Assembly: GCA_004431415.1 (NCBI GenBank)
Contig: QPMI01000535.1
Coordinates: forward strand, 492,026 to 556,025
Source of the DNA: Cyanophora paradoxa CCMP329
Taxonomy: Eukaryota; Plantae; Glaucophyta
Direction: 5' to 3'
Length of the DNA: 64,000 nt
The stretch's first letter is position 1. Every line of letters begins with the position of its first letter. The position numbers and the translations under genes are program-made. Under the pieces are notes generated by a model that had not been told where the DNA came from, searched no databases, and saw only the letters and a program-made list of their open reading frames with translations. Below, in pieces: positions 21,901 to 64,000 of this stretch.

Positions 21901-24900
21901 AAGCTCGGCCTCGACGCGACGACCCTCGGCACCCAGCTGAGCAACCCGCCGGCGCACCTCCGCCCCGCCCTCCTGGAGTACTCGGCGACCCCCGACTACA
22001 TGGGCTGCGGCCACATCAAGAACACCATCGAGGTCTGGAGCAACCCTAATATATAAATACAACGAATTCTCGAAACTGGCGCTGAAATTTGGAAATCGCA
22101 GCAACCCACGACGTACGGGATCGACGCCCAGCTGACGAAGTGGGCCGTCCGCTCCTTCACCCGCGCGCTCTGGGCCGACACCTCCCGCGGCGCCGGCCGC
22201 TTCGTCTACGAGGTGCGCTCGCTCGGTCCGGTGGCTTCTGTCCGTCCCAGCGCACTGACGCGGGGCGGTCGCCGCAGAACCTGCCGGGCGAGCACGTCGA
22301 GGGCGCCGTGCTGCTCGTCAAGTCGGCCGGCTGCAAGGACCACGCCGCCGAGGTCGCCCCGCACCAGGGCAACCTCGTCCCCGGGCAGAAGCCGGCGCTG
22401 GGCGACGGCGAGGCCTTCATCTTCCACTACGCCGACGTGCCCATGTTCCGCGAGTGGAACGCCAAGGTCGGTCCGACTGAGGCGGCCGCCGCAGCCCGCC
22501 GCGGGTCGGCGTCGACGTCGCTGACGGATTCCGCCCGCGCGCAGTTCTTCACCGACAGCGTCCGCCCGGCGATCGCCGCCCCTCCGGCGACGTTGACCTC
22601 CGTCGCGTACTCCGGCATGGTCACCGAGATGAACAGCATCTTCCAGCCCGGCGTGCGCCCCTCCCTCTGTTAGATCTTGGGGATTTATCCTTGGACCTCG
22701 GCCTGACCCCGCAACCCGGCAGCTCGGCTACACTGTGTCCAAGCTCGCGTCGACCCTTCCCATGTTGTGCGTCTCCCATCCCAGACCGCGACCGCCGCTA
22801 TCGCTCGGAGAGCTGAAGGCGCCCCGCCCCGCAGCTACGACGACGTCTCTGGGACCAAGTACTCGGAGATCTCCCTCGCCGTTAAGGCCGACGAGGCCGC
22901 CGTCAAGGGTCCGCCCCGCCCGCCCGGACGACCCCTCGGGCTCCCCGCCATCGGACGCGCTCTAACTTTTCATTTGGTGCAGGCAAGCTGCAGTCGAAGA
23001 AGGAGGTCCTCTCGTTCCACGTCGACCTGCCCGGCCTCCCGTGCTCCGTCCTCACCGCCAGCGGCTTCAAGGACATCAAAGCCAGCCTCGCCGCGTGCGC
23101 CCGGCATTTCTGCGCGCGCGCTTCCTCGTTCGTTTAAATTGATCTCCCGCGCTCGCAGCAAGCTCCTTCTGAACCCGAGCCGCCTCCTCGTGTCCAACGT
23201 GCGCTGCGGCCTCCAGGAGCGCATGCGGCGCACGCTCTTCCAGACCTCGCGTGTCGCCCGCCGCGGCCTCCTCGCCTCGGCCGTCGTCACCGACGGCACC
23301 TGGACCGTCCTCACCGCCCACGTCCTCCCCCCGCTCCGTGCGCCCGCCAGGCCCACTCTAGATCTTCACTGCCGTCGTCGTGCTGATCATGGGCCCCTCG
23401 GCAGGCTTCGACGACAAGCTGACGCTGGACGTGATGAGCAAGCGCCTGAACGACACCATGAACCACCTCACGATGACCGTTGTCGGCTACGGCAACGTCG
23501 TCCTCCGCCGCGTGGACGGCTCCGACCAGTACCCCGCCGACGCGAGCGGCAAGGACTACGGCACCGTCGCCGCGCCGTCGCGCTTCGCCCTCGACGCCGC
23601 TGCCGACCTCAAGAGCTACCTCTCCACCGTCTCCGCCGCCGCCGGCCCGCACCCCGCCGCCCTCGACCACACCAAGGTCCGAACCGGCCCCCGCGCCCTC
23701 TGTTTGAATTCTGCAGTCGTTAATCCGGTCTCGCCACAGATCGCGAAGCTCGTTGCCGCCGGCAAGCCGCACTTCCGCGACGTCCGCTTCGCCCCCCACT
23801 ACTGCATTGACGGCGCGCGGCCGCCCGTGTTCAATTTACTCACGTTTCCCCTATGCTGAAGCGGCGGCGCAGGCCGGCACGTGCGCGGCTCGGTGCACAC
23901 GCCCGGAGGCGACATCTCCGAGTTCCTGCTCGCCCTCTCCTCGTTCCAGCGGACGGTTCTCAACAACGCCGCCATCTCCGACGAGCAGGTCTACCAGATC
24001 ATGACCGCCTGGATCGACGCCTTCGCCATCCCCAACGAGGTGACCCGCCCCGCCCGATCTCATCTCTGCAGAGAGCCCACGCGGAACGGAACTGATTCGC
24101 GCTCTGCAGCGGCCGTTCTACATGCACACGGACGAGCACTCGGAGGAGTACCTGCACAAGAAGCTCGGGCGGGACCTCTCGTTTGACATCTCCATGCCCC
24201 CGGCCAACGAGGCGGAGGAGAAGCTGCTGCTCGAGGCCGTCATCGACCCCGAGACCCACGGCTGCGGCCACCTCAAGGTCCGCTCCAATATTAAATTTAT
24301 CTTACGTCCTCGAGCTAATTTAATTTATGCTCGCTTTTGTTCGCAGCTCACGCTCAAGAACCCCGACATCTACGGCACCTCGGCGGACCTCACGAAGAGC
24401 GTGATCAAGGCCTACTACCGCGCCCTGTGGCGCGACCGCGCCGCCGTCCCCGGCGGCCTCGGCGCCGTCGACCGCCAGGTCCTCCCCGGCGACCACGCCG
24501 AGGGGTGAGCGCCCTCGCCTGCGTTTTGGATCCGCACACCGACGCGTCCGCTGATCACGAGCGTGTCGCAATCGCGCAGCTCGGTGCTCGTCGTGTCGCA
24601 GACGAAGGACATGGGCGACTCGGTCGTCACCTTCGCGCCCAACGTGCCGTCCATCGGCCAGGTCTTCCTCTTCCACGCCGACGCCCTCGACTTCATCCGC
24701 CAGTCCTTCGTCCGCTTCTTCTGCGACCACAAGACCAAGCTCGGCGCCGGCGCGACCGCCGAGTGCCACTCGTCCAAGATCCGCGCCGACATGAAGAAGA
24801 TCTTCGACGGCGGCCTGGCGCACACGGCCGGCCGCCTCGCGGCGAACCGCGCGATGGACTCGCTGGCGATCACGGCGCCGGCGGTGGGCGGCATGGCCGG

Positions 24901-45599: not shown

Positions 45600-47868
45600 A
45601 GCTATATAGGCCTGTCTATGTGTTGCCTGCAGCTGATTGTGTACTCGAACCTGAAGGTGGACTACCGTTATATTAAAAATTACAGTATGGACATATGCAT
45701 GGAGCTTTATATACATACTGCGCATGCCGCCTGCTCGTTTGCCCCAAGGCCGACATGTATGTTTGTAGTAGTGCTTTGATATTGAGTAGGAAAATATTGT
45801 ACATGTATACGTAAACATTGTACTTTTGATATTGAGTATACGTAGGAAAACGTTGTATACGTATCGCGTATTGCCTGATCATGTCTGGTGCAGTTTGTTT
45901 TTTATGATCTTGCAATTGGTGCAAATACGATCGCCTTGTGATCATGAATTGCGAATGATAATCAATGGATGCGAGCAAACAGTCCGGCAGCTGCAGTCCG
46001 GCGTGATGCATCAGACGCCGTGACGGTCGCCAATTCATGATTCCCCCTGATTTTCCGGTGCGGCCGCATTTCCGAAGCTTTAAGTTCCCGGAGTCCTTCC
46101 GAAGTCGGCCTTGGGGAAAGGAGAGGCCCTTAGGTCTGTGCATATCCTGTCTGTAAATTCAAAATGCGATTCAGGTGAAATTTTTTGGACCTAGGTACCC
46201 ATTTTCGACCCTACACGATGGCCGGGCTACTTTTCAAATGTGACCTCTAACAAGCACTAACAGGACGTACGAACGCATTATTTGTAGTATGTTCGCGTTT
46301 AGCTCGATTGCCATTGGCACAAAAAGTCAATTCACCTATATTAAGCGTGAATGTTATTGGTTCCAGCTTGCTTCCCCTTCGCCGATGGAAATTGCAAAAT
46401 TAAAGCCTCTAGATCTGTACGGTAGAGACTGTACCCGGCTGGGAGGCTGGAACCACTTGGCGCTTCGCAGGCGGAATCGCCGCGCGTACGTCGCTTCGCA
46501 ATCGATCGCGATCAACGATCGAGCGCTAGCGCTTTAGCTAGCGCTAGCAGCGCCCGGCGGCCGGCGCCGACGTCGCGATCGATATCGACGCCGGCGCCGG
46601 CCGCGCCAGGCGTTGCTATACGAAGAAGCCTAGCTATCGGCGTACGCGTATACGTATCTGCAAGCTAAGAGCTACTATAGCTAGTACTAGCTACAGGCGG
46701 CGTACTATGGTAGTCCTCTCAACAGTAACCGCGCGCGGTAACGCCGCGGTTGCGGGCCCCGGCCCCGTTTCAAAACAAAGAGCGGCCACCCTCACGCCTT
46801 GAAAGTTGAAACCCCGGCCCAAGCCTTGAAGACCCAAGTTAAGGCCACTCCTGTTCCGCACTGAATCCGCAGGGACTCGTGACTCGCTTGCTGGAATTCA
46901 CTTAATTGATCAATTTCGAATTCTGGATCCGGATTCCGGATCCACGTCCTGCAGCTGCAGCTGGGATCCGGATCATCGGTGATCATGATGCATGACATGA
47001 TGAATTGACAATTTGACATCGGATCATCGGATAACGCTCCGACCGTTCTGGCCGCGGTTACTAAGTGGCTAGTAGTAGCCTAGTACTAGACTACTACTAG
47101 TAGAGTACCCAGTAACTAGAATAGTACTGTAGGAGCCCCTCGGAGGCGGAAATTAAAATTGCCGAGTACGCTAGTAGCCTAGTAGTCGGTCTGATAAATA
47201 GTACTACCTGGTACGGGACAAGTCATGATCACGACTCACGAGACTCACGACTCACGAGTCACGAGCCTCGGAGTCACGCGATCCTCGGAGACTCACGACC
47301 GGACTTGCTTCAACTTCCTTCAAGAGTCGCTTGCCGACTTTCGAGCTGCCGTTTGCAAGTCGGTTCGAGAGCTGCATTTATCATACTCCTAAAAAAACAT
47401 GATTGCCAAATCATGCTGAACGGAAAATGATACATTAATAATGAACTTCAGGAAATGATTGCCGCGATCTTAGTGGGACGCAGAACGTACAATTTAATAG
47501 GTCCGGTGCTAGCTATATAGGCTACTTAGAACACCAAAAAAATAGAACACATAAACACGGCGCCCGCTTAATTGCCGCGGTCCCAATTTGGACTCCCAAA
47601 TAGTAATTACCGCGCCGAAGTCTTGCATTGACGCGGTAATTTGGTACCGCGCCGTAACCGCGCTGTTACCACGGTAATTCTCTCCTGCGAAGTTGCTCTA
47701 AATAGTACCCCCCAAAAGTACCGCCCCATACAAGCCTCAAACTTTAATAACGCGGTAATATGATTAATGCACTAATCAACGGTGTACAATGTACATAAAC
47801 AGTCTGAGGCTATCTCCGATACTACTAGGCTAGTACTGGAGTCCGAGAATTGGACTCCTATTACTAGT
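45600..47868. other. AT-richer non-coding region with probable transposon remnants
   Basis: No credible exons. Iterated TTACCGCG/CGCGGTAA, GACTCACGA and TAGTA motifs, plus hairpins. Confidence 0.45.
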
Positions 47869-48584
47869 AGAGCCTTCTCATCGCTCCGGCGATCGCTAGG
47901 CCCTGGTACCGAGTACTCCGGGGCGATCGCCAGCGCGAACCGTCGGACGACGGACGCGGCGCCGGCGATCGCTTGAAAAAGGCCCCGGCCAGATCCGAGC
48001 CCACGGCCGGCGGGCATAGTGAACATAGTGCCAAAATTTCGCTCCGAAAACACGCTTTTTAGAAGGATCGGAAGAAAGCGCGCCCAGGCAGGTCCGAGGG
48101 GCGGTTCCGGGACGTACCTACTGACTCAGAGCTGCTTGCGCTGGGCCCGCCGGGCGACGCCATGGTTGAGAGATCGAATCCCTGCGCGCCGCCTTACAGC
48201 GGCCGAGGAAGGGGCGACGGCTGCAGAATTCGATGATGTGAACCTCGGACAAGCGAAAGCGTGTAGCTAGCGCGCCGCCGGCGCCGCGGGTGAGCCGATG
48301 AAGCGAGCGATGTGTACTCCTCGCGTGCGCGGGCGCGGCGAAGTCGCCTGCGGGCGGGCGTGGCGCCGCGGGGCTGAGCACGGCGCGCGCGCTGCGAAGC
48401 GCTATGCGCGAGCTTTGCGCGAGCTTTGCGTCGACGTCGCGCGCCTCACTTTCGAAGGTCGGGGTACCCCCCGACTCATTCCCCCTAAACTTGGGGCTCG
48501 GTGGCTTAAAAGCGAAGGCTCTGGGGTACATCGACGAAATTTGACTTGCTCCACAAAATTGCAAGGCGCTCAAGAACTCTACGC

Positions 48585-51500
48585 TCACTGGAAGTTCAAC
48601 TGCGGCCCTACAAACTGCTTGCACCGCTCCACTAGCTCATCTAGTCTACCTGGGTCAGCAAACCGATCCTCCTCGGCCACTAGCGGCTTGCGGAACCATT
48701 CTTTCGCAACCGCAACAAATGGTGCGCAGTCCATTGGGCTGCGCTGGTGGTGCCCGGCGCATACCACCCGACCCCATCGAGGCGAGAAAAGAATCTCGAG
48801 CACGCGGTCAGCTCGGCATCTTGCCTTGAAGATGGAGCCAGCGGTCGTGTGGAAGGTCATATCATGCACAGGCTCCGAGAGCTGAAGGAGGGCCTGCACT
48901 AATGCAGCGGCGTGACTCTTGATGGTGACTCTGCTCGTGATATATATGAGCTCGAGGCAATCAGCAAGAGTGGTTACTGATATCCATGGACAGAAAAAAG
49001 GAAACCACAAGTAGAAAAAGGAAGAGGCGCACGGCCAGTGGTCCCACTCGAGATTGGTGAAGCCCCGGAGGATAACCATTGTTGCCTCCGGTGTTGTTCC
49101 CGGTACATCAAGCCGGTGCACTTGACTGGAGACGCTGCAGCGCGCGGCACCTTGCGTGGCCGTGCACTCCAGTGCACCGTCGTTTGGCGGTAGGCGAGCC
49201 AGCTTCTCGACGTACGCACGTGCTGCGGGGCTCGCTGCCCTCGCGTCCCGTATCGCGGTTGCGACCACGGCGATGCTCCCCCGTACCGATCTGGAGCCTC
49301 CTTCCTCCCGTGACATTGCAGGGAACCAGTGCAGTTTCGCCTTCAGGGTATTGCTCAGCGCGTTGAAGTATCGGTTCTCGGTGTTCGCCACGCTGCGACG
49401 CGCCCAAGTCAGAGCACGTTCAGCGGGAGAAGGGAAATAAGAAGGAAAAGAAACAAAGGAAAAGAAAGAAAAGAGAAGGGGGGTACGCGGACCGTCTGTA
49501 CAAGCAGGACAGGATGGGTGTCGGAATAGGCCGCTCAGGTGTGCCTAGCCATAGAGGCTTGTTTCGCCTCGTGTATGGCGGAGGCACATACGCCTCAACA
49601 TCGATGTCCGGCTGAGTTTCTCGTGAGCTTGAGCATTTGCGATAACCGTTGCTCGTACCTGTTGGACTTTCCGTGTAGTTCTCCTGTATGCCGTCGCGCC
49701 GAGTTCGTCCACCTCGGGGTACTCCTCTCCAGAGTCGTTGCCCCCATTCAGCATCCGGTGTGTTAGAACATCTGACTTGGAGCCCATCTGTTCCAGCACT
49801 GCAGCCACTTGCTTCAGAGCCTGAAAGCTGTTCTCCGCTGCGCGACCTGTACCGTATTTCTCCTGCACCGGAATTAGAGTTCAGTAACCCCTTCTGTGGC
49901 GTCGTCTTCGTACCCTCGCACGCACCGCCAGCTCTGGCTTCATGCGCAGCCGGGTGAAGAGCTCGTTCGCCGGCGCTTCGTGGTGGAGAACGGCAGGGTT
50001 TCCCATTGCCTCGTGGCACGCCTGTGGAGAACGGCAGGGTACGCGCATCAGCTCCACGTGTCGGGGGGGGGGGTACGCGTAGCGAAGGGGGAGGGGGGGT
50101 TGGAGGGGGGGGGGTAGTCGAACCTCCATTGGACTTGGCGCCTGTTCGGGAGCCGGGCCTGGGTCTTGACCTGCTTGCCGCGCGGCCTCCCACGCTGCTC
50201 GCGCCCGCCTTGCGTTGCCGTGCTCCTCGTCGTCTGGTTGGCAATTGTCGCCCACCGCCGAAAACGCGATTTGCGGACAAGGTCTGAGAAGATAATGCCG
50301 ACTGATATGCTGCTTGCCGGCCCTGCAAGAAGGCGAAGAAGCTCCTTGCCGCTCTTCCGAACAGCCTGCAGGACCTGCACATCGCTTGCAATCTTGCCGC
50401 CACGACCGACATCCTGTTGCCTCCGTACGCGTTGCACTTCCGAAGAAGCTTCTTCACCTCCGGGTACGACACGAGATCGTCCTGCGCCTTGCGCTTCCGC
50501 CCTTTCCCACGTGGCAACTCTTCCACCAACGCGGCCTCTGCAGCTGCTGCTGCAAGCTCCACACATGCATGAAGCCTGCGTCGCCATTGGTAAGAAAAAA
50601 AACTTTACCCCCCTCCGCCCCCCCCCCCCCCCGGATGCATACCACAGCTGGAGTGATTCGCCTTCCGTGTCTGCTGCTGTGCTGCGTGCACTGATTGAGC
50701 GAGACTGCGGAACTGGCCCTTCATTTCTTCCTTCGTGCCAAGGTACATTGCTTGCTGGCTGAGCCCGAGAGTCGCTTGCATACGCAGAAGGTTGATTTCA
50801 GACTGTCCGTTTGTGACCTAATATAAAATTAAGAACATGTTACGAAAAGACAGAGCATGAAAGCATCGTGCACCTCCATGAAAGCATTTGCAAGACCTTG
50901 TGCCCGTGCAGGCTCACGGTCAACTCAGCGTCTCCTGGCCGCAGGGCCAGAAGCTGTGTGAGCACAGCAGCAGCTGAGCGGATCTCGCATCATCAGGGGC
51001 TGCATCACATTTCGGTTTTCAAAATAGAATGCAGTGATTTGAAGGGACGTACTGTAGAAATCGAGTGATGAATTGCTCGATCGCCCGTAGAAGAACACCT
51101 CTATCCAGAGCGATAGGAACATCTTCGATTCAACAGCGTATGATCGTTTGTCATCGCTAGTACTTGTGTCATCCTTGCCCTCCTGAAAGTCCAGAGACAA
51201 GATGACCTGACCGGGCAGCAAGTAAGCAGAAGAAGCACGAGGCAAGCTGGCATGGACACGTGCCAGATCTATCTCTCGCAGTCGTCTCTCACGGATGTAG
51301 ATCTTGTTGGTATAGAAGCTCGTCACCCGGGCCTTTAGCCAGTCGTAGTGCCTGGCTCGAAGGTCCGTATCCACTGCAAACTCACCGTGCGCCCCTGGCA
51401 CGCCAAGGCCCAGAAATGCACACTGTGCCTGCAGTGAGTGCCGTGCTTCAACTGGCCAAGAAAGATAGATGCTTACGTCCATATCAATGAGCTCATCGAG

Positions 51501-52715
51501 TTGAGAAGAGCTTGAGGTATCTTCCTTGTCGCCAGCAGCTATATCAGCATCTGGATGAGGGTCGGGACCGGTGCGCTGAAGGCTTGGCGATTCGAGTGCG
51601 ACCTAAATGCAGTATCTCATGGCGAATCTCAAGCTAAAGAAGATCGAGGACGCACAGTGCTCATGAAGTGCTTCAGAGCATGGAGATCCTCCAGTGTCCG
51701 TGTCCGGTTCTTTGCTGGTTCACCTCGAAACTGCAACCGACAAGCGTTCGCCTGAGCTTGCCGAGCCGCTTCTGTCACCTGGAGAAGTTGGTCTTAGATT
51801 CCATTCGATCAATTCTTTGAGCTGCAGAGCACCTCATCAAGCCAATCAACACAACTCTGAAATTTGGGGCCTCGAAACGCTCACTTTGTGCCCACAAACA
51901 GGTTGCGCAGTGCACGCAAGCATCTGGCAGGGGGCAGGTCGACGATGATGTCCTCCACATAATGCACTTGGGGGTCCAGATCTGCAAACATGATAAGACA
52001 AAGAGGCGGCGTGCAGATTTCACAGAGAAACGCACAGATCTCGAAGGGTGCATGTGCTTGTCGCCTTCTGCAGCGCCACCAGCGTCGCCGCCCGCTGCGC
52101 CGTCCAGGGCGCCACCCGCCGCGCCGCCTCCCGTGCCGCCTCCCGCGCCGCCTCCCGCGCCGCCTCCCGCGCCGCGCACCGGGCCGGGGGAGGGGGAGGG
52201 ACAGGGCCGGGGGGGGGCGGGCCCGGGGGAGGGGCGGGGCCGGGGGAGGGACGGGCCCGGGGGAGGGGCGGGGCCGGGGGGAGGGGGGGGGCGGGGGGAG
52301 GGGCGGGCCGGGGGAGGGGCGGGCCCGGGGGGAGGGGCGGGCCGGGGGGAGGGGCGGGGCCGGGGGAGGGGGGGGGGCGGGGGAGGGGCGGGCCCGGGGG
52401 AGGGGCGGGCCCGGGGGGAGGGGCGGGCCCGGGGGAGGGGCGGGGCCGGGGGGAGGGACGGGCCCGGGGGGAGGGGCGGGCCCGGGGGGAGGGACGGGCC
52501 CGGGGGGAGGGGCGGGGCCGGGGGGAGGGGCGGGGCCCGGGGAGGGGGAGGGGCGGGACAAGCTCAAGGCCGGAGCCGCCCCCGAGGCCGCCCACGAGGC
52601 CACCACCCGCCGCGCGGCCCGCCAGAAGGGGGTTGGGAGATGAGCTGGAGGTCCACTCCATCTCTTCCTCCCAAAGAGTGTGCTCCTGGGGTCGACATGC
52701 TGCGCAGTCGGGCAT
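48585..52715 (-). CDS. Spliced orphan gene within the element (copy 1, disrupted by deletions)
   Basis: Exons can be joined across GT/GC-AG introns: (GPAPPP)n, Gly-rich stretch, APFEI|YLDPQVHYVEDIIVDLPP.., ARHYDWLKARVTSFYTNKIYI..VILSLDFQEG.., PDDGEIRSAAAVL.., RGKGRKRK (NLS-like), FRRWATIANQLIFKG.., ..ERCKQFVGPQLNFQ*. Start codon uncertain. Confidence 0.55.
52180..52560. repeat. ~18-bp G-rich minisatellite (also at ~57415-57770 and ~62635-62955)
   Basis: Repeats of CGGGGGGAGGG(G/A)CGGG(G/C)C that read as GP(A/V)PPP on the minus strand. Confidence 0.85.
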
Positions 52716-53046
52716 AAGACACCGAAAAGCAGCGATCGCTTGGCCAATGAGAAGGCGGTGGACGTCAAGCCCGCGGCGACCGTTAGAACTGAGAACCCAG
52801 AAGCGATCGCCGGCCCAGCAGCTCTTTGTTAGAGGTCGGACTCGCTGGGTATGGCGCCGAACACAAAGCGATCGCCGAGCAATGAGAAGGCTCTATGCGC
52901 GGGGCAGATCTAGCGATCCAATTGAATAGAGAATCTCTATGCGAGCAAGCTCGCAGCGCTACGGGAGGCGGGCACGCACTGCAGGCGTTGGCGTTGGCTG
53001 GTGCGACGAACTTGAAGCAGCTCCTGCGCAAGCGATCGCCGGTCAG

Positions 53047-56000
53047 AGAGCCTTCTCATCGCTCCGGCGATCGCTAGGCCCTGGTACCGAGTACTCCGGG
53101 GCGATCGCCAGCGCGAACCGTCGGACGACGGACGCGGCGCCGGCGATCGCTTGAAAAAGGCCCCGGCCAGATCCGAGCCCACGGCCGGCGGGCATAGTGA
53201 ACATAGTGCCAAAATTTCGCTCCGAAAACACGCTTTTTAGAAGGATCGGAAGAAAGCGCGCCCAGGCAGGTCCGAGGGGCGGTTCCGGGACGTACCTACT
53301 GACTCAGAGCTGCTTGCGCTGGGCCCGCCGGGCGACGCCATGGTTGAGAGATCGAATCCCTGCGCGCCGCCTTACAGCGGCCGAGGAAGGGGCGACGGCT
53401 GCAGAATTCGATGATGTGAACCTCGGACAAGCGAAAGCGTGTAGCTAGCGCGCCGCCGGCGCCGCGGGTGAGCCGATGAAGCGAGCGATGTGTACTCCTC
53501 GCGTGCGCGGGCGCGGCGAAGTCGCCTGCGGGGCGGGCGTGGCGCCGCGGGGCTGAGCACGGCGCGCGCGCTGCGAAGCGCTATGCGCGAGCTTTGCGCG
53601 AGCTTTGCGTCGACGCCGCGCGCCTCACTTTCGAAGGTCGGGGTACCCCCCCGACTCATTCCCCCCTAAACTTGGGGGCTCGGTGGCTTAAAAGCGAAGG
53701 CTCTGGGGTACATCGACGAAATTTGACTTGCTCCACAAAATTGCAAGGCGCTCAAGAACTCTACGCTCACTGGAAGTTCAACTGCGGCCCTACAAACTGC
53801 TTGCACCGCTCCACTAGCTCATCTAGTCTACCTGGGTCAGCAAACCGATCCTCCTCGGCCACTAGCGGCTTGCGGAACCATTCTTTCGCAACCGCAACAA
53901 ATGGTGCGCAGTCCATTGGGCTGCGCTGGTGGTGCCCGGCGCATACCACCCGACCCCATCGAGGCGAGAAAAGAATCTCGAGCACGCGGTCAGCTCGGCA
54001 TCTTGCTTGAAGATGGAGCCAGCGGTCGTGTGGAAAGGTCATATCATGCACAGGCTCCGAGAGCTGAAGGAGGGCCTGCACTAATGCAGCGGCGTGACTC
54101 TTGATGGTGACTCTGCTCGTGATATATATGAGCTCGAGGCAATCAGCAAGAGTGGTTACTGATATCCATGGACAGAAAAAAGGAACCACAAGTAGAAAAA
54201 GGAAGAGGCGCACGGCCAGTGGTCCCACTCGAGATTGGTGAAGCCCCGGAGGATAACCATGTTGCCTCCGGTGTTGTTCCCGGTACATCAAGCCGGTGCA
54301 CTTGACTGGAGACGCTGCAGCGCGCGGCACCTTGCGTGGCCGTGCACTCCAGTGCACCGTCGTTTGGCGGTAAGGCGAGCCAGCTTCTCGACGTACGCAC
54401 GTGCTGCGGGGCTCGCTGCCCTCGCGTCCCGTATCGCGGTTGCGACCACGGCGATGCTCCCCGTACGATCTGGAGCCTCCTTCCTCCGTGACAATTGCAG
54501 GGAACCAGTGCAGTTTCGCCTTCAGGGTATTGCTCAGCGCGTTGAAGTATCGGTTCTCGGTGTTCGCCACGCTTGCGACGCGCCCAAGTCAGAGCACGTT
54601 CAGCGGGAGAAGGGAAATAAGAAGGAAAAGAAACAAGGAAAAGAAAGAAAAGAGAAGGGGGGTACGCGACCGTCTGTACAAGCAGGACAGGATGGGTTGT
54701 CGAATAGGCGCTCAGGTGTGCCTAGCCATAGAGGCTTGTTTCGCCTCGTGTATGGCGGAGGCACATACGCCTCAACATCGATGTCCACATCGACCAATTG
54801 TCCCGCGCCGTTTGGCTGAGTTTCTCGTGAGCTTGAGCATTTGCGATAACCGTTGCTCGTACCTGTTGGACTTTCCGTGTAGTTCTCCTGTATGCCGTCG
54901 CGCCGAGTTCGTCCACCTCGGGGTACTCCTCTCCAGAGTCGTTGCCCCCATTCAGCATCCGGTGTGTTAGAACATCTGACTTGGAGCCCATCTGTTCCAG
55001 CACTGCAGCCACTTGCTTCAGAGCCTGAAGCTGTTCTCCGGCTGCGCGACCTGTAACCGTATTTCTCCTGCACCGGAATTAGAGTTTCAGTAACCCCTTC
55101 TGTGGCGTCGTCTTCGTACCCTCGCACGCACCGCCAGCTCTGGCTTCATGCGCAGCCGGGTGAAGAGCCTCGTTCGCCGGCGCTTCGTGGTGGAGAACGG
55201 CAGGGTTTCCCATTGCCTCGTGGCACGCCTGTGGAGAACGGCAGGGTACGCGCATCAGCTCCACGTGTCGGGGGGGGGGGGTACGCGTAGCGAAGGGGGA
55301 GGGGGGTTGGAGGGGGGGGTAGTCGAACCTCCATTGGACTTGGCGCCTGTTCGGGAGCCGGGCCTGGGTCTTGACCTGCTTGCGCGCGGCTCCACGCTGC
55401 TCGCGCCGCCTTGCGTTGCCGTGTCCTCGTCGTCGAATGCCTTGGCTAGATCTACAAGGCCTTTGAATATGAGCTGGTTGGCAATTGTCGCCCACGCCGA
55501 AAACGCGATTTGCGGACAAGGTCTGAGAAGATAATGCCGACTGATATGCTGCTTGCCGGCCCTGCAAGAAGGCGAAGAAGCTCCTTGCCGCTCTTCCGAA
55601 CAACCTGCAGGACCTGCACATCGCTTGCAATCTTGCCGCCACGACCGACATCCCTGTTGCCTCCGTACGCGTTGCACTTCGAAGAAGCTTCTTCACCTCC
55701 GGGTACGACACGAGATCGTCCTGCGCCTTGCGCTTCCGCCCTTTCCACGTGGCAACTCTTCCACCAACGCGGCCTCTGCAGCTGCTGCTGCAAGCTCCAC
55801 ACATGCATGAAGCCTGCGTCGCCATTGGTAAGAAAAAAACTTTACCCCCCTCCGCCCCCCCCCCCCCCCCCCGGATGCATACCACAGCTGGAGTGATTCG
55901 CCTTCCCGTGTCTGCTGCTGTGCTGCGTGCACTGATTGAGCGAGACTGCGGAACTGGCCCTTCATTTCTTCCTTCGTGCCAAGGTACATTGCTTGCTGGC

Positions 56001-58105
56001 TGAGCCCGAGAGTCGCTTGCATACGCAGAAGGTTGATTTCAGACTGTCCGTTTGTGACCTAATATAAAATTAAGAACATGTTACGAAAGACAGAGCATGA
56101 AAGCATCGTGCACCTCCATGAAAGCATTTGCAAGACCTTGTGCCCGTGCAGGCTCACGGTCCAACTCAGCGTCTCCTGGCCGCAGGGCCAGAAGCTGTGT
56201 GAGCACAGCAGCAGCTGAGCGGATCTCGCCATCATCAGGGGCTGCATCACATTTCGGTTTTCAAAATAGAATGCAGTGATTTGAAGGGGACGTACTGTAG
56301 AAATCGAGTGATGAATTGCTCGATCGCCCGTAGAAGAACACCTCTATCCAGAGCGATAGGAACATCTTCGATTCAACAGCGTATGATCGTTTGTCATCGC
56401 TAGTACTTGTGTCATCCTTGCCCTCCTGAAAGTCCAGAGACAAGATGACCTGACGGGCAGCAAGTAAGCAGAAGAAGCACGAGGCAAGCTGGCATGGACA
56501 CGTGCCAGATCTATCTCTCGCAGTCGTCTCTCACGGATGTAGATCTTGTTGGTATAGAAGCTCGTCACCGGGCCTTTAGCCAGTCGTAGTGCCTGGCTCG
56601 AAGGTCCGTATCCACTGCAAACTCACGTGCGCCCCTGGCACGCCAAGGCCAGAAATGCACACTGTGCCTGCAGTGAGTGCCGTGCTTCAACTGCCAAGAA
56701 AGATAGATGCTTACGTCCATATCAATGAGCTCATCGAGTTGAGAAGAGCTTGAGGTATCTTCCTTGTCGCCAGCAGCTATATCAGCATCTGGATGAGGGT
56801 CGGGACCGGTGCGCTGAAGGCTTGGCGATTCGAGTGCGACTAAATGCAGTATCTCATGGCGAATCTCAAGCTAAAGAAGATCGAGGACGCACAGTGCTCA
56901 TGAAGTGCTTCAGAGCATGGAGATCCTCCAGTGTCCGTGTCCGGTTCTTTGCTGGTTCACCTCGAAACTGCAACCGACAAGCGTTCGCCTGAGCTTGCCG
57001 AGCCGCTTCTGTCACCTGGAGAAGTTGGTCTTAGATTCCATTCGATCAATTCTTTGAGCTGCAGAGCACCTCATCAAGCCAATCAACACAACTCTGAAAT
57101 TTGGGGCCTCGAAACGCTCCTTTGTGCCCACAACAGGTTGCGCAGTGCACGCAAGCATCTGGCAGGGGGCAGGTCGACGATGATGTCCTCCACATAATGC
57201 ACTTGGGGGTCCAGATCTGCAAACATGATAAGACAAAGAGGCGGCGTGCAGATTTCACAGAGAAAACGCACAGATCTCGAAGGGTGCATGTGCTTGTCGC
57301 CTTCTGCCAGCGCCACCAGCGTCGCCGCCCGCTGCGCCGTCCAGGGCGCCACCCGCCGCGCCGCCTCCCGTGCCGCCTCCCGCGCCGCCTCCCGCGCCGC
57401 TCCCGCGCCGCGCACCGGGCCGGGGAGGGGGAGGGACAGGGCCGGGGGGGGGCGGGCCCGGGGGGAGGGGCGGGCCGGGGGGAGGGACGGCCCGGGGGGA
57501 GGGGCGGGGCCGGGGGGAGGGGGGGGGGCGGGGGAGGGGCGGGCCCGGGGGGAGGGGCGGGCCGGGGGAGGGGCGGGCCGGGGAGGGCGGGGGGGGGGGC
57601 GGGCGGGAGGGGCGGGCCGGGGGGAGGGGCGGGCCCGGGGGAGGGCGGCCCGGGGGGGGGCGGGGCGGGGAGGGACGGGCCCGGGGGAGGGCGGGCCGGG
57701 GGGAGGGACGGGCCCGGGGGAGGGGCGGGGCCGGGGGGAGGGGCGGGCCCGGGGAGGGGGAGGGCGGGGACAGCTCAAGGCCGGAGCCGCCCCGAGGCCG
57801 CCCACGAGGCCACCACCCGCCGCGCGGCCCGCCAGAAGGGGGTTGGGAGATGAGCTGGAGGTCCACTCCATCTCTTCCTCCCCAAAGAGTGTGCTCCTGG
57901 GGTCGACATGCTGCGCAGTCGGGCATAAGACACCGAAAAGCAGCGATCGCTTGGCCAATGAGAAGGCGGTGGACGTCAAGCCCGCGGCGACCGTTAGAAC
58001 TGAGAACCCAGAAGCGATCGCCGGCCCAGCAGCTCTTTGTTAGAGGTCGGACTCGCTGGGTATGGCGCCGAACACAAAGCGATCGCCGAGCAATGAGAAG
58101 GCTCT
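53047..58105. mobile_element. Inverted-repeat-bounded element, copy 2
   Basis: Same termini and interior as copy 1. Confidence 0.7.
53767..57926 (-). CDS. Spliced orphan gene, copy 2
   Basis: Same exons as copy 1, with many 1-bp indels that are likely sequencing errors. Confidence 0.5.
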
Positions 58106-58257
58106 ATGCGCGGGGCAGATCTAGCGATCCAATTGAATAGAGAATCTCTATGCGAGCAAGCTCGCAGCGCTACGGGAGGCGGGCACGCACTGCAGGCGTT
58201 GGCGTTGGCTGGTGCGACGAACTTGAAGCAGCTCCTGCGCAAGCGATCGCCGGTCAG

Positions 58258-61200
58258 AGAGCCTTCTCATCGCTCCGGCGATCGCTAGGCCCTGGTACCG
58301 AGTACTCCGGGGCGATCGCCAGCGCGAACCGTCGGACGACGGACGCGGCGCCGGCGATCGCTTGAAAAAGGCCCCGGCCAGATCCGAGCCCACGGCCGGC
58401 GGGCATAGTGAACATAGTGCCAAAATTTCGCTCCGAAAACACGCTTTTTAGAAGGATCGGAAGAAAGCGCGCCCAGGCAGGTCCGAGGGGCGGTTCCGGG
58501 ACGTACCTACTGACTCAGAGCTGCTTGCGCTGGGCCCGCCGGGCGACGCCATGGTTGAGAGATCGAATCCCTGCGCGCCGCCTTACAGCGGCCGAGGAAG
58601 GGGCGACGGCTGCAGAATTCGATGATGTGAACCTCGGACAAGCGAAAGCGTGTAGCTAGCGCGCCGCCGGCGCCGCGGGTGAGCCGATGAAGCGAGCGAT
58701 GTGTACTCCTCGCGTGCGCGGGCGCGGCGAAGTCGCCTGCGGGGCGGGCGTGGCGCCGCGGGGCTGAGCACGGCGCGCGCGCTGCGAAGCGCTATGCGCG
58801 AGCTTTGCGCGAGCTTTGCGTCGACGTCGCGCGCCTCACTTTCGAAGGTCGGGGTACCCCCCCGACTCATTCCCCCCTAAACTTGGGGGCTCGGTGGCTT
58901 AAAAGCGAAGGCTCTGGGGTACATCGACGAAATTTGACTTGCTCCACAAAATTGCAAGGCGCTCAAGAACTCTACGCTCACTGGAAGTTCAACTGCGGCC
59001 CTACAAACTGCTTGCACCGCTCCACTAGCTCATCTAGTCTACCTGGGTCAGCAAACCGATCCTCCTCGGCCACTAGCGGCTTGCGGAACCATTCTTTCGC
59101 AACCGCAACAAATGGTGCGCAGTCCATTGGGCTGCGCTGGTGGTGCCCGGCGCATACCACCCGACCCCATCGAGGCGAGAAAAGAATCTCGAGCACGCGG
59201 TCAGCTCGGCATCTTGCCTTGAAGATGGAGCCAGCGGTCGTGTGGAAGGTCATATCATGCACAGGCTCCGAGAGCTGAAGGAGGGCCTGCACTAATGCAG
59301 CGGCGTGACTCTTGATGGTGACTCTGCTCGTGATATATATGAGCTCGAGGCAATCAGCAAGAGTGGTTACTGATATCCATGGACAGAAAAAAGGAAACCA
59401 CAAGTAGAAAAAGGAAGAGGCGCACGGCCAGTGGTCCCACTCGAGATTGGTGAAGCCCCGGAGGATAACCATTGTTGCCTCCGGTGTTGTTCCCGGTACA
59501 TCAAGCCGGTGCACTTGACTGGAGACGCTGCAGCGCGCGGCACCTTGCGTGGCCGTGCACTCCAGTGCACCGTCGTTTGGCGGTAGGCGAGCCAGCTTCT
59601 CGACGTACGCACGTGCTGCGGGGCTCGCTGCCCTCGCGTCCCGTATCGCGGTTGCGACCACGGCGATGCTCCCCCGTACCGATCTGGAGCCTCCTTCCTC
59701 CCGTGACATTGCAGGGAACCAGTGCAGTTTCGCCTTCAGGGTATTGCTCAGCGCGTTGAAGTATCGGTTCTCGGTGTTCGCCACGCTGCGACGCGCCCAA
59801 GTCAGAGCACGTTCAGCGGGAGAAGGGAAATAAGAAGGAAAAGAAACAAAGGAAAAGAAAGAAAGAGAAGGGGGTACGCGGACCGTCTGTACAAGCAGGA
59901 CAGGATGGGTGTCGGAATAGGCCGCTCAGGTGTGCCTAGCCATAGAGGCTTGTTTCGCCTCGTGTATGGCGGAGGCACATACGCCTCAACATCGATGTCC
60001 ACATCGACCAATTGTCCCGCGCCGTTTGGCTGAGTTTCTCGTGAGCTTGAGCATTTGCGATAACCGTTGCTCGTACCTGTTGGACTTTCCGTGTAGTTCT
60101 CCTGTATGCCGTCGCGCGAGTTCGTCCACCTCGGGGTACTCCTCTCCAGAGTCGTTGCCCCCATTCAGCATCCGGTGTGTTAGAACATCTGACTTGGAGC
60201 CCATCTGTTCCAGCACTGCAGCCACTTGCTTCAGAGCCTGAAAGCTGTTCTCCGCTGCGCGACCTGTACCGTATTTCTCCTGCACCGGAATTAGAGTTCA
60301 GTAACCCCTTCTGTGGCGTCGTCTTCGTACCCCTCGCACGCACCGCCAGCTCTGGCTTCATGCGCAGCCGGGTGAAGAGCTCGTTCGCCGGCGCTTCGTG
60401 GTGGAGAACGGCAGGGTTTCCCATTGCCTCGTGGCACGCCTGTGGAGAACGGCAGGGTACGCGCATCAGCTCCACGTGTGGGGGGGGGGGTACGCGTAGC
60501 GAAGGGGAGGGGGGGTTGGAGGGGGGGGTAGTCGAACCTCCATTGGACTTGGCGCCTGTTCGGGAGCCGGGCCTGGGTCTTGACCTGCTTGCCGCGCGGC
60601 CTCCCACGCTGCTCGCCCGCCTTGCGTTGCCGTGCTCCTCGTCGTCGAATGCCTTGGCTAGATCTACAAGGCCTTTGAATATGAGCTGGTTGGCAATTGT
60701 CGCCCACCGCCGAAAACGCGATTTGCGGACAAGGTCTGAGAAGATAATGCCGACTGATATGCTGCTTGCCGGCCCTGCAAGAAGGCGAAGAAGCTCCTTG
60801 CCGCTCTTCCGAACACCTGCAGGACCTGCACATCGCTTGCAATCTTGCCGCCACGACCGACATCCCTGTTGCCTCCGTACGCGTTGCACTTCCGAAGAAG
60901 CTTCTTCACCTCCGGGTACGACACGAGATCGTCCTGCGCCTTGCGCTTCCGCCCTTTCCCACGTGGCAACTCTTCCACCAACGCGGCCTCTGCAGCTGCT
61001 GCTGCAAGCTCCACACATGCATGAAGCCTGCGTCGCCATTGGTAAGAAAAAAAACTTTACCCCCCCTCCCCCCCCCCCCCCCCCCCGGATGCATACCACA
61101 GCTGGAGTGATTCGCCTTCCCGTGTCTGCTGCTGTGCTGCGTGCACTGATTGAGCGAGACTGCGGAACTGGCCCTTCATTTTTCCTTCGTGCCAAGGTAC

Positions 61201-63281
61201 ATTGCTTGCTGGCTGAGCCCGAGAGTCGCTTGCATACGCAGAAGGTTGATTTCAGACTGTCCGTTTGTGACCTAATATAAAATTAAGAACATGTTACGAA
61301 AAGACAGAGCATGAAAGCATCGTGCACCTCCATGAAAGCATTTGCAAGACCTTGTGCCCGTGCAGGCTCACGGTCCAACTCAGCGTCTCCTGGCCGCAGG
61401 GCCAGAAGCTGTGTGAGCACAGCAGCAGCTGAGCGGATCTCGCCATCATCAGGGCTGCATCACATTTCGGTTTTCAAAATAGAATGCAGTGATTTGAAGG
61501 GGACGTACTGTAGAAATCGAGTGATGAATTGCTCGATCGCCCGTAGAAGAACACCTCTATCCAGAGCGATAGGAACATCTTCGATTCAACAGCGTATGAT
61601 CGTTTGTCATCGCTAGTACTTGTGTCATCCTTGCCCTCCTGAAAGTCCAGAGACAAGATGACCTGACCGGGCAGCAAGTAAGCAGAAGAAGCACGAGGCA
61701 AGCTGGCATGGACACGTGCCAGATCTATCTCTCGCAGTCGTCTCTCACGGATGTAGATCTTGTTGGTATAGAAGCTCGTCACCCGGGCCTTTAGCCAGTC
61801 GTAGTGCCTGGCTCGAAGGTCCGTATCCACTGCAAACTCACCGTGCGCCCCTGGCACGCCAAGGCCCAGAAATGCACACTGTGCCTGCAGTGAGTGCCGT
61901 GCTTCAACTGGCCAAGAAAGATAGATGCTTACGTCCATATCAATGAGCTCATCGAGTTGAGAAGAGCTTGAGGTATCTTCCTTGTCGCCAGCAGCTATAT
62001 CAGCATCTGGATGAGGGTCGGGACCGGTGCGCTGAAGGCTTGGCGATTCGAGTGCGACCTAAATGCAGTATCTCATGGCGAATCTCAAGCTAAAGAAGAT
62101 CGAGGACGCACAGTGCTCATGAAGTGCTTCAGAGCATGGAATCCTCCAGTGTCCGTGTCCGGTTCTTTGCTGGTTCACCTCGAAACTGCAACCGACAAGC
62201 GTTCGCCTGAGCTTGCCGAGCCGCTTCTGTCACCTGGAGAAGTTGGTCTTAGATTCCATTCGATCAATTCTTTGAGCTGCAGAGCACCTCATCAAGCCAA
62301 TCAACACAACTCTGAAATTTGGGGCCTCGAAACGCTCCCTTTGTGCCACAAACAGGTTGCGCAGTGCACGCAAGCATCTGGCAGGGGGCAGGTCGACGAT
62401 GATGTCCTCCACATAATGCACTTGGGGGTCCAGATCTGCAAACATGATAAGACAAAGAGGCGGCGTGCAGATTTCACAGAGAAACGCACAGATCTCGAAG
62501 GGTGCATGTGCTTGTCGCCTTCTGCCAGCGCCACCAGCGTCGCCGCCCGCTGCGCCGTCCAGGGCGCCACCCGCCGCGCCGCCTCCGTGCGCCTCCCGCG
62601 CCGCCTCCCGCGCCGCCTCCCGCGCCGCGCACCGGGCCGGGGGGAGGGGAGGGACAGGGCCGGGGGGGGGCGGGCCCGGGGGGCGGGCCGGGGGAGGAGG
62701 GCCGGGGGAGGGCGGGCGGGAGGGGGGGCGGGGGAGGGCGGGCCCGGGGGGGGGGGCGGGCCCGGGGGAGGGGCGGGCCCGGGGGAGGGCGGGGCCGGGA
62801 GGGGGGGCGGGGGAGGGCGGCGGGGGGGCGGGCCGGGGGAGGGGCGGGGCGGGAGGGGCGGGGCGGGGGGGACGGCCGGGGGAGGGGCGGCCGGGGGGGG
62901 ACGGCCGGGGGAGGGCGGGGGGGGAGGGCGGGCCCGGGGAGGGGGGGGCGGGACAAGCTCAAGGCCGGAGCCGCCCCCGAGGCCGCCCACGAGGCCACCA
63001 CCGCCGCGCGGCCCGCCAGAAGGGGTTGGGAGATGAGCTGGAGGTCCACTCATCTCTTCTCCCAAAGAGTGTGCTCCTGGGTCGACATGCTGCGCAGTCG
63101 GGCATAAGACACCGAAAAGCAGCGATCGCTTGGCCAATGAGAAGGCGGTGACGTCAAGCCCGCGGCGACCGTTAGAACTGAGAACCCAGAAGCGATCGCC
63201 GGCCCAGCAGCTCTTTGTTAGAGGTCGGACTCGCTGGTATGGCGCCGAACACAAGCGATCGCCGAGCAATGAGAAGGCTCT
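58258..63281. mobile_element. Inverted-repeat-bounded element, copy 3
   Basis: Same termini and interior as copy 1. Confidence 0.7.
58978..63105 (-). CDS. Spliced orphan gene, copy 3
   Basis: Same exons. The 268-aa 3' ORF is identical to that of copy 1. Confidence 0.55.
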
Positions 63282-63582
63282 ATGCGCGGGGCAGATCTAG
63301 CGATCCAATTGAATAGAGAATCTCTATGCGAGCAAGCTCGCAGCGCTACGGGAGGCGGGCACGCACTGCAGGCGTTGGCGTTGGCTGGTGCGACGAACTT
63401 GAAGCAGCTCCTGCGCAAGCGATCGCCGGTCTATGCGCGGGGCAGATCTAGCGATCCAATTGAATAGAGAATCTCTATGCGAGCAAGCTCGCAGCGCTAC
63501 GGGAGGCGGGCACGCACTGCAGGCGTTGGCGTTGGCTGGTGCGACGAACTTGAAGCAGCTCCTGCGCAAGCGATCGCCGGTC
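63281..63582. repeat. Direct duplication of the 151-bp inter-element spacer
   Basis: TATGCGCGG...GATCGCCGGTC occurs at 63281-63431 and again at 63432-63582. Confidence 0.9.
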
Positions 63583-64000
63583 AGAGAGCCTTCTCATCGC
63601 TCCGGCGATCGCTAGGCCCTGGTACCGAGTACTCCGGGGCGATCGCCAGCGCGAACCGTCGGACGACGGACGCGGCGCCGCGATCGCTTGAAAAGGCCCC
63701 GGCCAGATCCGAGCCCACGGCCGGGGCATAGTGAACATAGTGCCAAAATTCGCTCCGAAAACACGCTTTTTAGAAGGATCGGAAGAAAGCGCGCCAGGCA
63801 GGTCCGAGGGGCGGTTCCGGGACGTACCTACTGACTCAGAGCTGCTTGCGCTGGGCCCGCCGGGGCGACGCCATGGTTGAGAGATCGAATCCCTGCGCGC
63901 CGCCTTACGCGGGCGAGGAAGGGGCGACGCTGCAGAATTCGATGATGTGAACCTCGGACAAGCGAAAGCGTGTAGCTAGCGCGCCGCCGGCGCCGCGGGT

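Follow-up and report, generated by a model that had tools for sequence, protein, structure and literature searches.

The right-hand part of the 64-kb stretch of DNA analysed here (Cyanophora paradoxa CCMP329, contig QPMI01000535.1, positions 492,026 to 556,025 of the forward strand; hereafter the window) carries a tandem array of a unit that is bounded by inverted repeats and contains a single spliced gene for an orphan protein, and we tentatively interpret this unit as an unclassified selfish genetic element. The array comprises three complete head-to-tail units (5.18-5.33 kb) followed by the first part of a fourth, as seen in direct-repeat families, with Tandem Repeats Finder and in a MAFFT alignment (Table 1), which bears out the count of at least three near-identical units given in a preliminary description of this DNA made from its letters alone. 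Unit 1 is joined to unique DNA on its left, and a window search found zero fragments of the unit in the first 47.8 kb. Each core of about 5.03 kb lies between inverted repeats of 28-29 bp. The left one (IR-L) marks the first base of the array and the right one (IR-R) ends 152 bp before the end of the unit, both as the preliminary description had placed them. The two arms match across 28-29 nt with one mismatch and one indel, and a 17-mer taken from the inverted repeat occurs 7 times in the window (expected 0.05), at unit ends only.

The ends of the unit have a characteristic internal organisation that is repeated, inverted, on both sides of the core. The octamer GCGATCGC is found 33 times in the window compared to 5.7 expected, and 25 of these 33 sites fall into unit end regions. 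Two direct modules of the form GCGATCGC-N4-5-CAATGAGAAGGC are located in the right end (52732-52758 and 52868-52893), while the terminal 28 nt of the left end are the same module in inverted orientation; GGCCGGCGATCGCTT lies around 100 nt inside both unit ends, again in inverted orientation. On the gene strand, a small hairpin (ATCGCCGGAGCGAT) is positioned 11 nt from the end. The segment behind IR-R, given as ~152 bp in the preliminary description, proved to be a 151-bp spacer unit that is doubled in unit 3. It finishes with CCGGCGATCGCT, which in the complementary-strand reading is a partial end motif without the outer 17 nt, and together with the repeats that flank it the spacer is predicted to fold strongly (z = -4.1).

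Outside a G-rich minisatellite, the units show 12-25 substitutions and 45-117 gap positions, mostly of one base each, relative to each other per ~4.2 kb. Because short-read contigs correct many of the single-base gaps, we ascribe these to errors of the long-read assembly, and the pattern agrees with a PacBio RSII/Canu assembly that retained the raw consensus for unmapped repeats (PMC6704402). True structural differences are the doubled spacer of unit 3 and the absence from unit 1 of 27 bp and 40 bp that are present in the large exons of units 2 and 3 (at 49609 and 50233), so that this copy at the array edge may be defective. Short-read contigs of four independent public runs contain the junction at which the spacer end meets the next unit start (58257 to 53047), so that head-to-tail linkage, or a circle, exists in the organism. 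An array of ribosomal DNA or other RNA genes was ruled out by an Rfam scan of the window from 44 to 64 kb that gave no match.

Each full unit holds one gene on the minus strand. Three RNA-like runs yielded contigs of 2.2-2.5 kb in which 12 segments of 47-101 nt are missing. For 7 of these segments, CT..AC ends are listed, which correspond to GT..AG on the gene strand, and all 12 are retained in a DNA-like run of 2012; their removal in the former and retention in the latter indicate a spliced minus-strand mRNA of at least 13 exons. Reading frames were taken from the majority consensus of the three units, in which most exons are open and frame breaks remain in exons 2 and 8, and they match those of the independent gene models P0001-P0008 as well as those of a colinear homologue on Logan contig L001. 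Two apparent "micro-exons" of 36 nt and 12 nt were rejected as alignment gaps inside exons 10 and 5, respectively. From LDPQVHY to the stop codon, the conserved part of the protein measures ~900 amino acids. Exon 1 is coding as well, since its final residues, ...APFEI, correspond to ...GPCEI at the beginning of L001, where GTAAG comes next, and the protein consequently reaches into a Gly/Arg/Pro-rich region. The minisatellite would encode PGPAPPP repeats on the gene strand and is either the N-terminal coding region or located upstream of the gene; if it is coding from a candidate ATG at 52715, the protein would total ~1,150 amino acids, giving an overall range of about 950-1,150. We leave the start codon unfixed because RNA depth falls upstream of ~57400. 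The single multi-exon gene of roughly 1000 amino acids foreseen in the preliminary description was thus confirmed together with its splicing, and its exons are indeed less GC-rich than the host's (58% compared to 72% in the first 45 kb of the window). The basic motif RGKGRKRK, which resembles a nuclear-localisation signal and had been pointed out previously, is present in exon 8 and conserved as GKGRKR in both L001 and a second subfamily of the unit.

Two further observations were made on the transcripts. Contigs of two RNA-like runs join 53970 to 57264 of unit 2, skipping 3.3 kb of the interior and inserting 8 extra bases (TTCCCCAG); this junction was not seen in the DNA-like run and could represent a transcribed, internally deleted copy or an unusual splice product. 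At the left end (53047-53568), downstream of the stop codon, RNA contig depth is several-fold above that of the coding exons, with a trough at 53569-53742, and could reflect transcripts of more abundant related copies or an intron in the 3' untranslated region as in gene models P0002 and P0016.

The unit is not confined to this locus. Gene models identical or near-identical to it in EukProt (EP00741_Cyanophora_paradoxa) come from at least eight assembly contigs, and consecutive models on several of them imply tandem units there, too. The 27-bp deletion seen in unit 1 recurs in model P0002, and the unit 3 frameshift in P0007; from these unit-specific defects we infer that the window is probably part of tig00021038 with the array at the contig end. 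A second subfamily, ~40-60% identical, is found on four further contigs, and L001 (run SRR31724264; GC 59%) represents a third lineage with ~45% identity and at least three shared intron positions. Several diverged lineages that each comprise multiple near-identical copies are typical of repeat families. As side observations, positions 1-3338 of L001 are colinear with the whole gene, with introns of ~45-50 nt and no GCGATCGC sites, and the contig stops right at the gene ends. A lookup in Logan contigs of exact open reading frames (ORFs) at the element ends recorded none.

The ends of the unit are considerably more abundant than its interior, with summed contig depth 6-50x that of the interior across ~520 bp at the left end and across the right end with its spacer (~340 bp). 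The most abundant version of the left end departs from the array copy at ~5% of sites in all four runs. Contigs leave unit 2 for other sequences at 53526, at 57894-57941 and at 58255, the last being the spacer end (...CCGGTC), from which four DNA contigs run on into different sequences. Judged from these contig-level data, related or non-autonomous copies seem to share the ends, and the spacer end appears able to serve as a boundary, in which case the 151-bp extension may be an alternative outer right end.

As far as sequence comparison can tell, the protein is an orphan with zero credible relatives outside Cyanophora except L001. Pfam had no match for raw ORFs, single exons or gene models, and NCBIfam and PHROGs gave only noise for ORFs, exons and gene models. 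An IstB-like NCBIfam match (E 0.005, 16 bits at a cut-off of 300) was discarded, having no backing from Pfam. It falls on a conserved block in exon 8, LLAGPA(S/G).IS.GI.FS (L001:1449-1940; ~50240-50420), that is P-loop-like but without the lysine, IstB being the helper ATPase of IS21. With a profile of the C-terminal half, an exhaustive HMMER search of 1.84 billion representative proteins matched 10, comprising six incomplete gene models from Cyanophora, three L001 ORFs and a repeat protein (E 5e-4) that we took as spurious. A word-based protein search with the N-terminal ORFs and scans of metagenomes and viruses were empty, the ESM Atlas gave no usable match for N-terminal exons 5-6, and searches of the PDB with two profiles returned 0 matches. 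For the C-terminal half, the ESM Atlas offered a weak lead to DUF6698/DUF6532 of Basidiomycota, with 157 shared features compared to 170 in most true family members. AlphaFold2 models built from shallow alignments were both unusable (predicted local distance difference test scores of 34 and 44).

Profile searches likewise agree with the preliminary description that no DDE, HUH/helicase or recombinase motif is recognisable. No DDE/D (RNase H-like) transposase was matched by Pfam, NCBIfam or the PDB on ORFs, exons or gene models, and neither DDE_Tnp_4 (PIF/Harbinger) nor another superfamily was found in Pfam, whose coverage of Sola transposases is uncertain. In the segment VILSLDFQE, previously suggested as a possible strand with the first catalytic Asp, this Asp is a Glu (ILSLEF) in the colinear homologue on L001. 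In Pfam and in exon alignments with L001, no helicase and no HUH/HUQ or GYxxK/YxxK motif conserved across the three subfamilies was found. A tyrosine recombinase, raised by a conserved H-x-x-R, was rejected since no conserved Tyr follows downstream. WLG..LY, GY.SVR and HW, then an acidic residue ~21 positions on and C(A/G)PF ~70 on, follow each other in an order and at distances that presumably resemble the motifs of Ulp1/SENP peptidases (C48), domains of which are carried by transposons, and we treat this as a lead only; peptidase C48 had no Pfam match at E<=10, two profiles found no SENP/Ulp chain in the PDB, and the Gln of the C48 oxyanion hole is not conserved in the orphan protein.

With confidence somewhat short of even, we favour the view that the unit is a glaucophyte-restricted, multi-copy, unclassified selfish element with terminal inverted repeats (TIRs) that has been amplified in tandem as arrays of core plus spacer. 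This is because the array starts to the base at IR-L, because the ends match as inverted repeats with their modules inverted between them, and because these ends are over-represented and occur in diverged variants. The same view builds on the near-identical copies on at least eight contigs together with the second subfamily and the L001 homologue, on a spliced and expressed orphan gene with exons of low GC, and on the junction at which 8 filler bases stand in place of 3.3 kb of the interior. The orphan protein would then enter the nucleus, bind the repeated end modules (GCGATCGC, 4-5 nt, CAATGAGAAGGC) and promote movement or copying of the unit at the DNA level, with DNA binding and catalysis as expected properties of the protein and mobility as one of the element. 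Arrays of core plus spacer would go back to an end-directed event, i.e., insertion next to a resident copy, sister-chromatid transposition or one-ended transposition, after which an array would start exactly at the left repeat, and unequal exchange would subsequently enlarge the array and vary the number of spacers. A bolder version would make the unit the founder of a new superfamily of eukaryotic mobile DNA whose ~1,000-amino acid orphan is a new transposition or replication enzyme that recognises the GCGATCGC end modules and spreads head-to-tail concatemers; we regard this as unlikely.

Several points weigh against a selfish element of this kind. No target-site duplication is visible at the sole array edge in the window, where the left flank (...ACTAGT) does not match the sequence right of IR-R (ATGCG...), the right array edge being located beyond the window; a duplication of this kind would be much shorter than the 152-bp spacer. 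None of the copies seen stands alone between two flanks, and no empty site turned up. The searches revealed no domain of a transposase, recombinase, HUH protein or helicase, so that the enzyme may be something other than this protein, with the absence claims limited in the N-terminal half, which was searched exon by exon only. Moreover, the abundance of the ends is a matter of summed contig depths and not of mapped copies.

A rival reading is a non-mobile tandem gene family, in which a lineage-specific host gene was multiplied by segmental duplication and unequal crossing-over, possibly in a subtelomeric setting like yeast Y', and in which the inverted repeat and the GCGATCGC clusters are the intergenic promoter/terminator region. 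We consider this possible, if on the improbable side. Many introns, expression and ~45% identity with shared intron positions in L001 are in keeping with a host gene, no transposition enzyme was found, all copies so far lie in arrays or array-only contigs with the array of the window at a contig end, and an AT-rich non-coding stretch precedes the array while the G-rich strand of the minisatellite points to the distal side. However, a gene family has to contend with an array edge that is, to the base, an inverted-repeat arm, and with ends that are far commoner than the gene and whose diverged variants are attached to other internal sequences. It also has to accommodate two or three subfamilies that each have near-identical copies on several contigs and a GC content well under that of host genes, and the window contains no telomere repeats (no runs of TTAGGG or TTTAGGG; the distal end of the array lies outside).

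The junction between units is compatible with an array as well as with a circle, such as a nuclear plasmid of the 2-micron or Ddp2 type. Replication as a circle or by a rolling-circle mechanism, be it of an episome or of a Helentron- or Replitron-like copy-and-paste element, has to be weighed, too. The inverted repeats of a 5.2-kb circle would enclose the 151-bp segment, which would act as a hairpin or origin; head-to-tail concatemers would be synthesised and integrated, starting at a nick beside IR-L, and the spacer would be a "fuzzy" right end formed by read-through. Exactly head-to-tail concatemers in an array that starts at one end, the asymmetry of a terminal left and a subterminal right repeat, the strong folding of the repeat-flanked spacer, the small hairpin near the end, the variable spacer number and several small contigs made of the unit alone (judged by gene numbering) would all be explained in this way, and Replitron-1 offers a parallel with right ends that carry downstream sequence and a protein that at first had no Pfam/CDD match either (PMC10288648). 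We nevertheless find this mode of replication unlikely, given that the catalytic motifs of such elements are not conserved among the three subfamilies, that helicase and TC...CTRR ends are missing, that the gene is antisense to the orientation fitting the Helentron repeat geometry, and that the array is joined to ordinary chromosomal DNA. Furthermore, glaucophytes yielded no Replitrons, whose terminal repeats are short and direct, not inverted (PMC10288648). A single unit or circle that a long-read assembler unrolled into an array is highly improbable: the region is rich in single-base indel errors, the array continues past the window edge and sister contigs contain nothing but the unit, but the junction recurs in short-read contigs of four runs (as it also would for a circle), the units differ structurally, and unit 1 continues into unique DNA.

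The selfish element that we favour can be compared to several known systems. Like TIR cut-and-paste transposons (e.g., hAT/Ac, CACTA/En-Spm, P), it has short terminal inverted repeats, a repeated motif inside both ends in inverted orientation, one intron-bearing gene with a motif resembling a nuclear-localisation signal, ends commoner than the interior and what may be an internally deleted derivative with filler bases. In contrast to these transposons, no DDE/RNase H-like domain was detected and no target-site duplication seen in it, it is known only as head-to-tail arrays with a 152-bp spacer, and its protein has no relatives in the superfamilies searched. The preliminary description had proposed a candidate new mobile element, an idea that the ends, the copies on at least eight contigs, the low GC and the orphan gene support. 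By contrast, its TIR model of a Sola2/3- or Harbinger-like element, superfamilies with their own DDE domain and a target-site duplication of 3-4 bp, gained no support, as no DDE domain was detected and no such duplication is visible at the one edge within the window. Its alternative of a Helentron/Helitron2-like unit gained no support either; geometry and concatemers fit, but there is neither Rep/HUH nor helicase, TC/CTRR ends are missing and the gene is antisense.

Helitrons and Helentrons encode a Rep protein (HUH, two Tyr) fused to a PIF1-type helicase, end in a 3' palindrome and insert between T and T. Helentron/Helitron2 elements and Replitrons share with the unit an asymmetric repeat geometry, concatemers, a possible read-through right end and occurrence in algae (for Helentrons from general knowledge), whereas the unit has no HUH/HUQ, catalytic Tyr, helicase, TC/CTRR ends or short direct terminal repeats. 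The geometry of the plus strand fits a Helentron, but the 152-nt tail is long and the gene lies on the other strand. Replitrons are characterised by a Rep with SUTU, HUQ and GYxxK motifs and by short direct terminal repeats (PMC10288648); these motifs are absent from the conserved blocks of the orphan protein, and its ends are inverted rather than direct. Replitrons are a useful precedent of an algal element whose protein had no known-domain match.

Yeast Y' elements are 5-7 kb units with one large ORF that recombination has spread to several chromosome ends, where they form short tandem arrays; they encode a helicase and are separated by telomere repeats. The unit resembles them as a 5-kb-class repeat with one large gene in short tandem arrays and differs in having no helicase and no telomere repeats in the window. 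In tandem arrays of transposons, the units are separated by a duplication of target-site size, whereas the separator here is a 151-bp unit with its own end-like motif and in variable number. Such arrays arise by double insertion followed by unequal exchange and likewise consist of whole transposons head to tail that are able to expand into a satellite-like array (McGurk and Barbash, bioRxiv 10.1101/158386 / PMC5932611).

Glaucophytes are a deep branch of the Archaeplastida, and in the Cyanophora assembly 11.5% of the genome was classed by its authors as unknown repeats (PMC6704402). The unit explains part of this unassembled repeat fraction and more than 18 broken gene models of the published proteome. 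Its inverted ends, its expression and the failure to match known families, for the C-terminal half even in the exhaustive search, mean that it could lead to a new kind of enzyme that moves or copies DNA, as Replitrons did.

Table 1. Coordinates of the array, its ends and its gene in the window, and contigs with further copies (IR-L and IR-R, left and right inverted repeat).
Feature	Position	Strand	Remarks
Unit 1	47869..53046	.	5178 bp; own 27-bp and 40-bp deletions within gene
Unit 2	53047..58257	.	5211 bp; reference unit for public reads/contigs
Unit 3	58258..63584	.	5327 bp; 151-bp spacer doubled
Unit 4, start	63585..64000	.	first 416 bp; window ends there
IR-L (AGAGCCTTCTCATCGCTCCGGCGATCGCT)	47869..47897	+	exact array start; further copies at 53047, 58258, 63585
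IR-R	52867..52894	-	further copies at 58078-58105, 63254-63281
Spacer	52895..53046	+	151-bp unit (TATGCG...GCCGGTC) plus AG; end with partial end-motif copy CCGGCGATCGCT
Doubled spacer, unit 3	63279..63582	+	two tandem 151-bp copies
Left subterminal cluster	47872..47972	-	three GCGATCGC sites (47889, 47923, 47965); outermost paired with GCCTTCTCAT
Right subterminal cluster	52732..52893	+	GCGATCGC at 52732, 52803, 52868
Gene, unit 1	48585..52184	-	stop 48585-48587; conserved coding exons up to ~52184
Gene, unit 2	53767..57420	-	exons backed by RNA contigs
Unit 2 exons 1-4	57272 upward (exon 1), 57067-57216, 56891-57012, 56715-56838	-	RNA contigs
Unit 2 exons 5-8	56505-56662, 56296-56448, 56112-56241, 55328-56056	-	RNA contigs
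Unit 2 exons 9-12	55131-55227, 54863-55065, 54671-54815, 54214-54571	-	RNA contigs
Unit 2 exon 13	54112 down to stop near 53767	-	RNA contigs
G-rich 17-bp minisatellite GGGGGAGGGGCGGGCCC	52192..52547	+	~20 copies; also 57427-57765, 62657-62953
Basic motif RGKGRKRK	50480..50503 (approximate)	-	exon 8; resembles nuclear-localisation signal
Contigs with element gene models			tig00021038, tig00021042, tig00021680, tig00021682, tig00021684 (four models), tig00001006, tig00001110, tig00001163 (two models)

Directly before the array, the window contains a 2.3-kb non-coding stretch (45500-47868) with 48.5% GC compared to 72% in the first 45 kb. It is rich in short palindromes and ACTAGTAG-type repeats and might be a boundary, a subtelomere-like region or an old repeat. 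Elsewhere in the window, the preliminary description labelled, from sequence alone, a carbonic-anhydrase-repeat surface protein (18967-27478) and a TIR-domain NADase-like gene (28839-30309).

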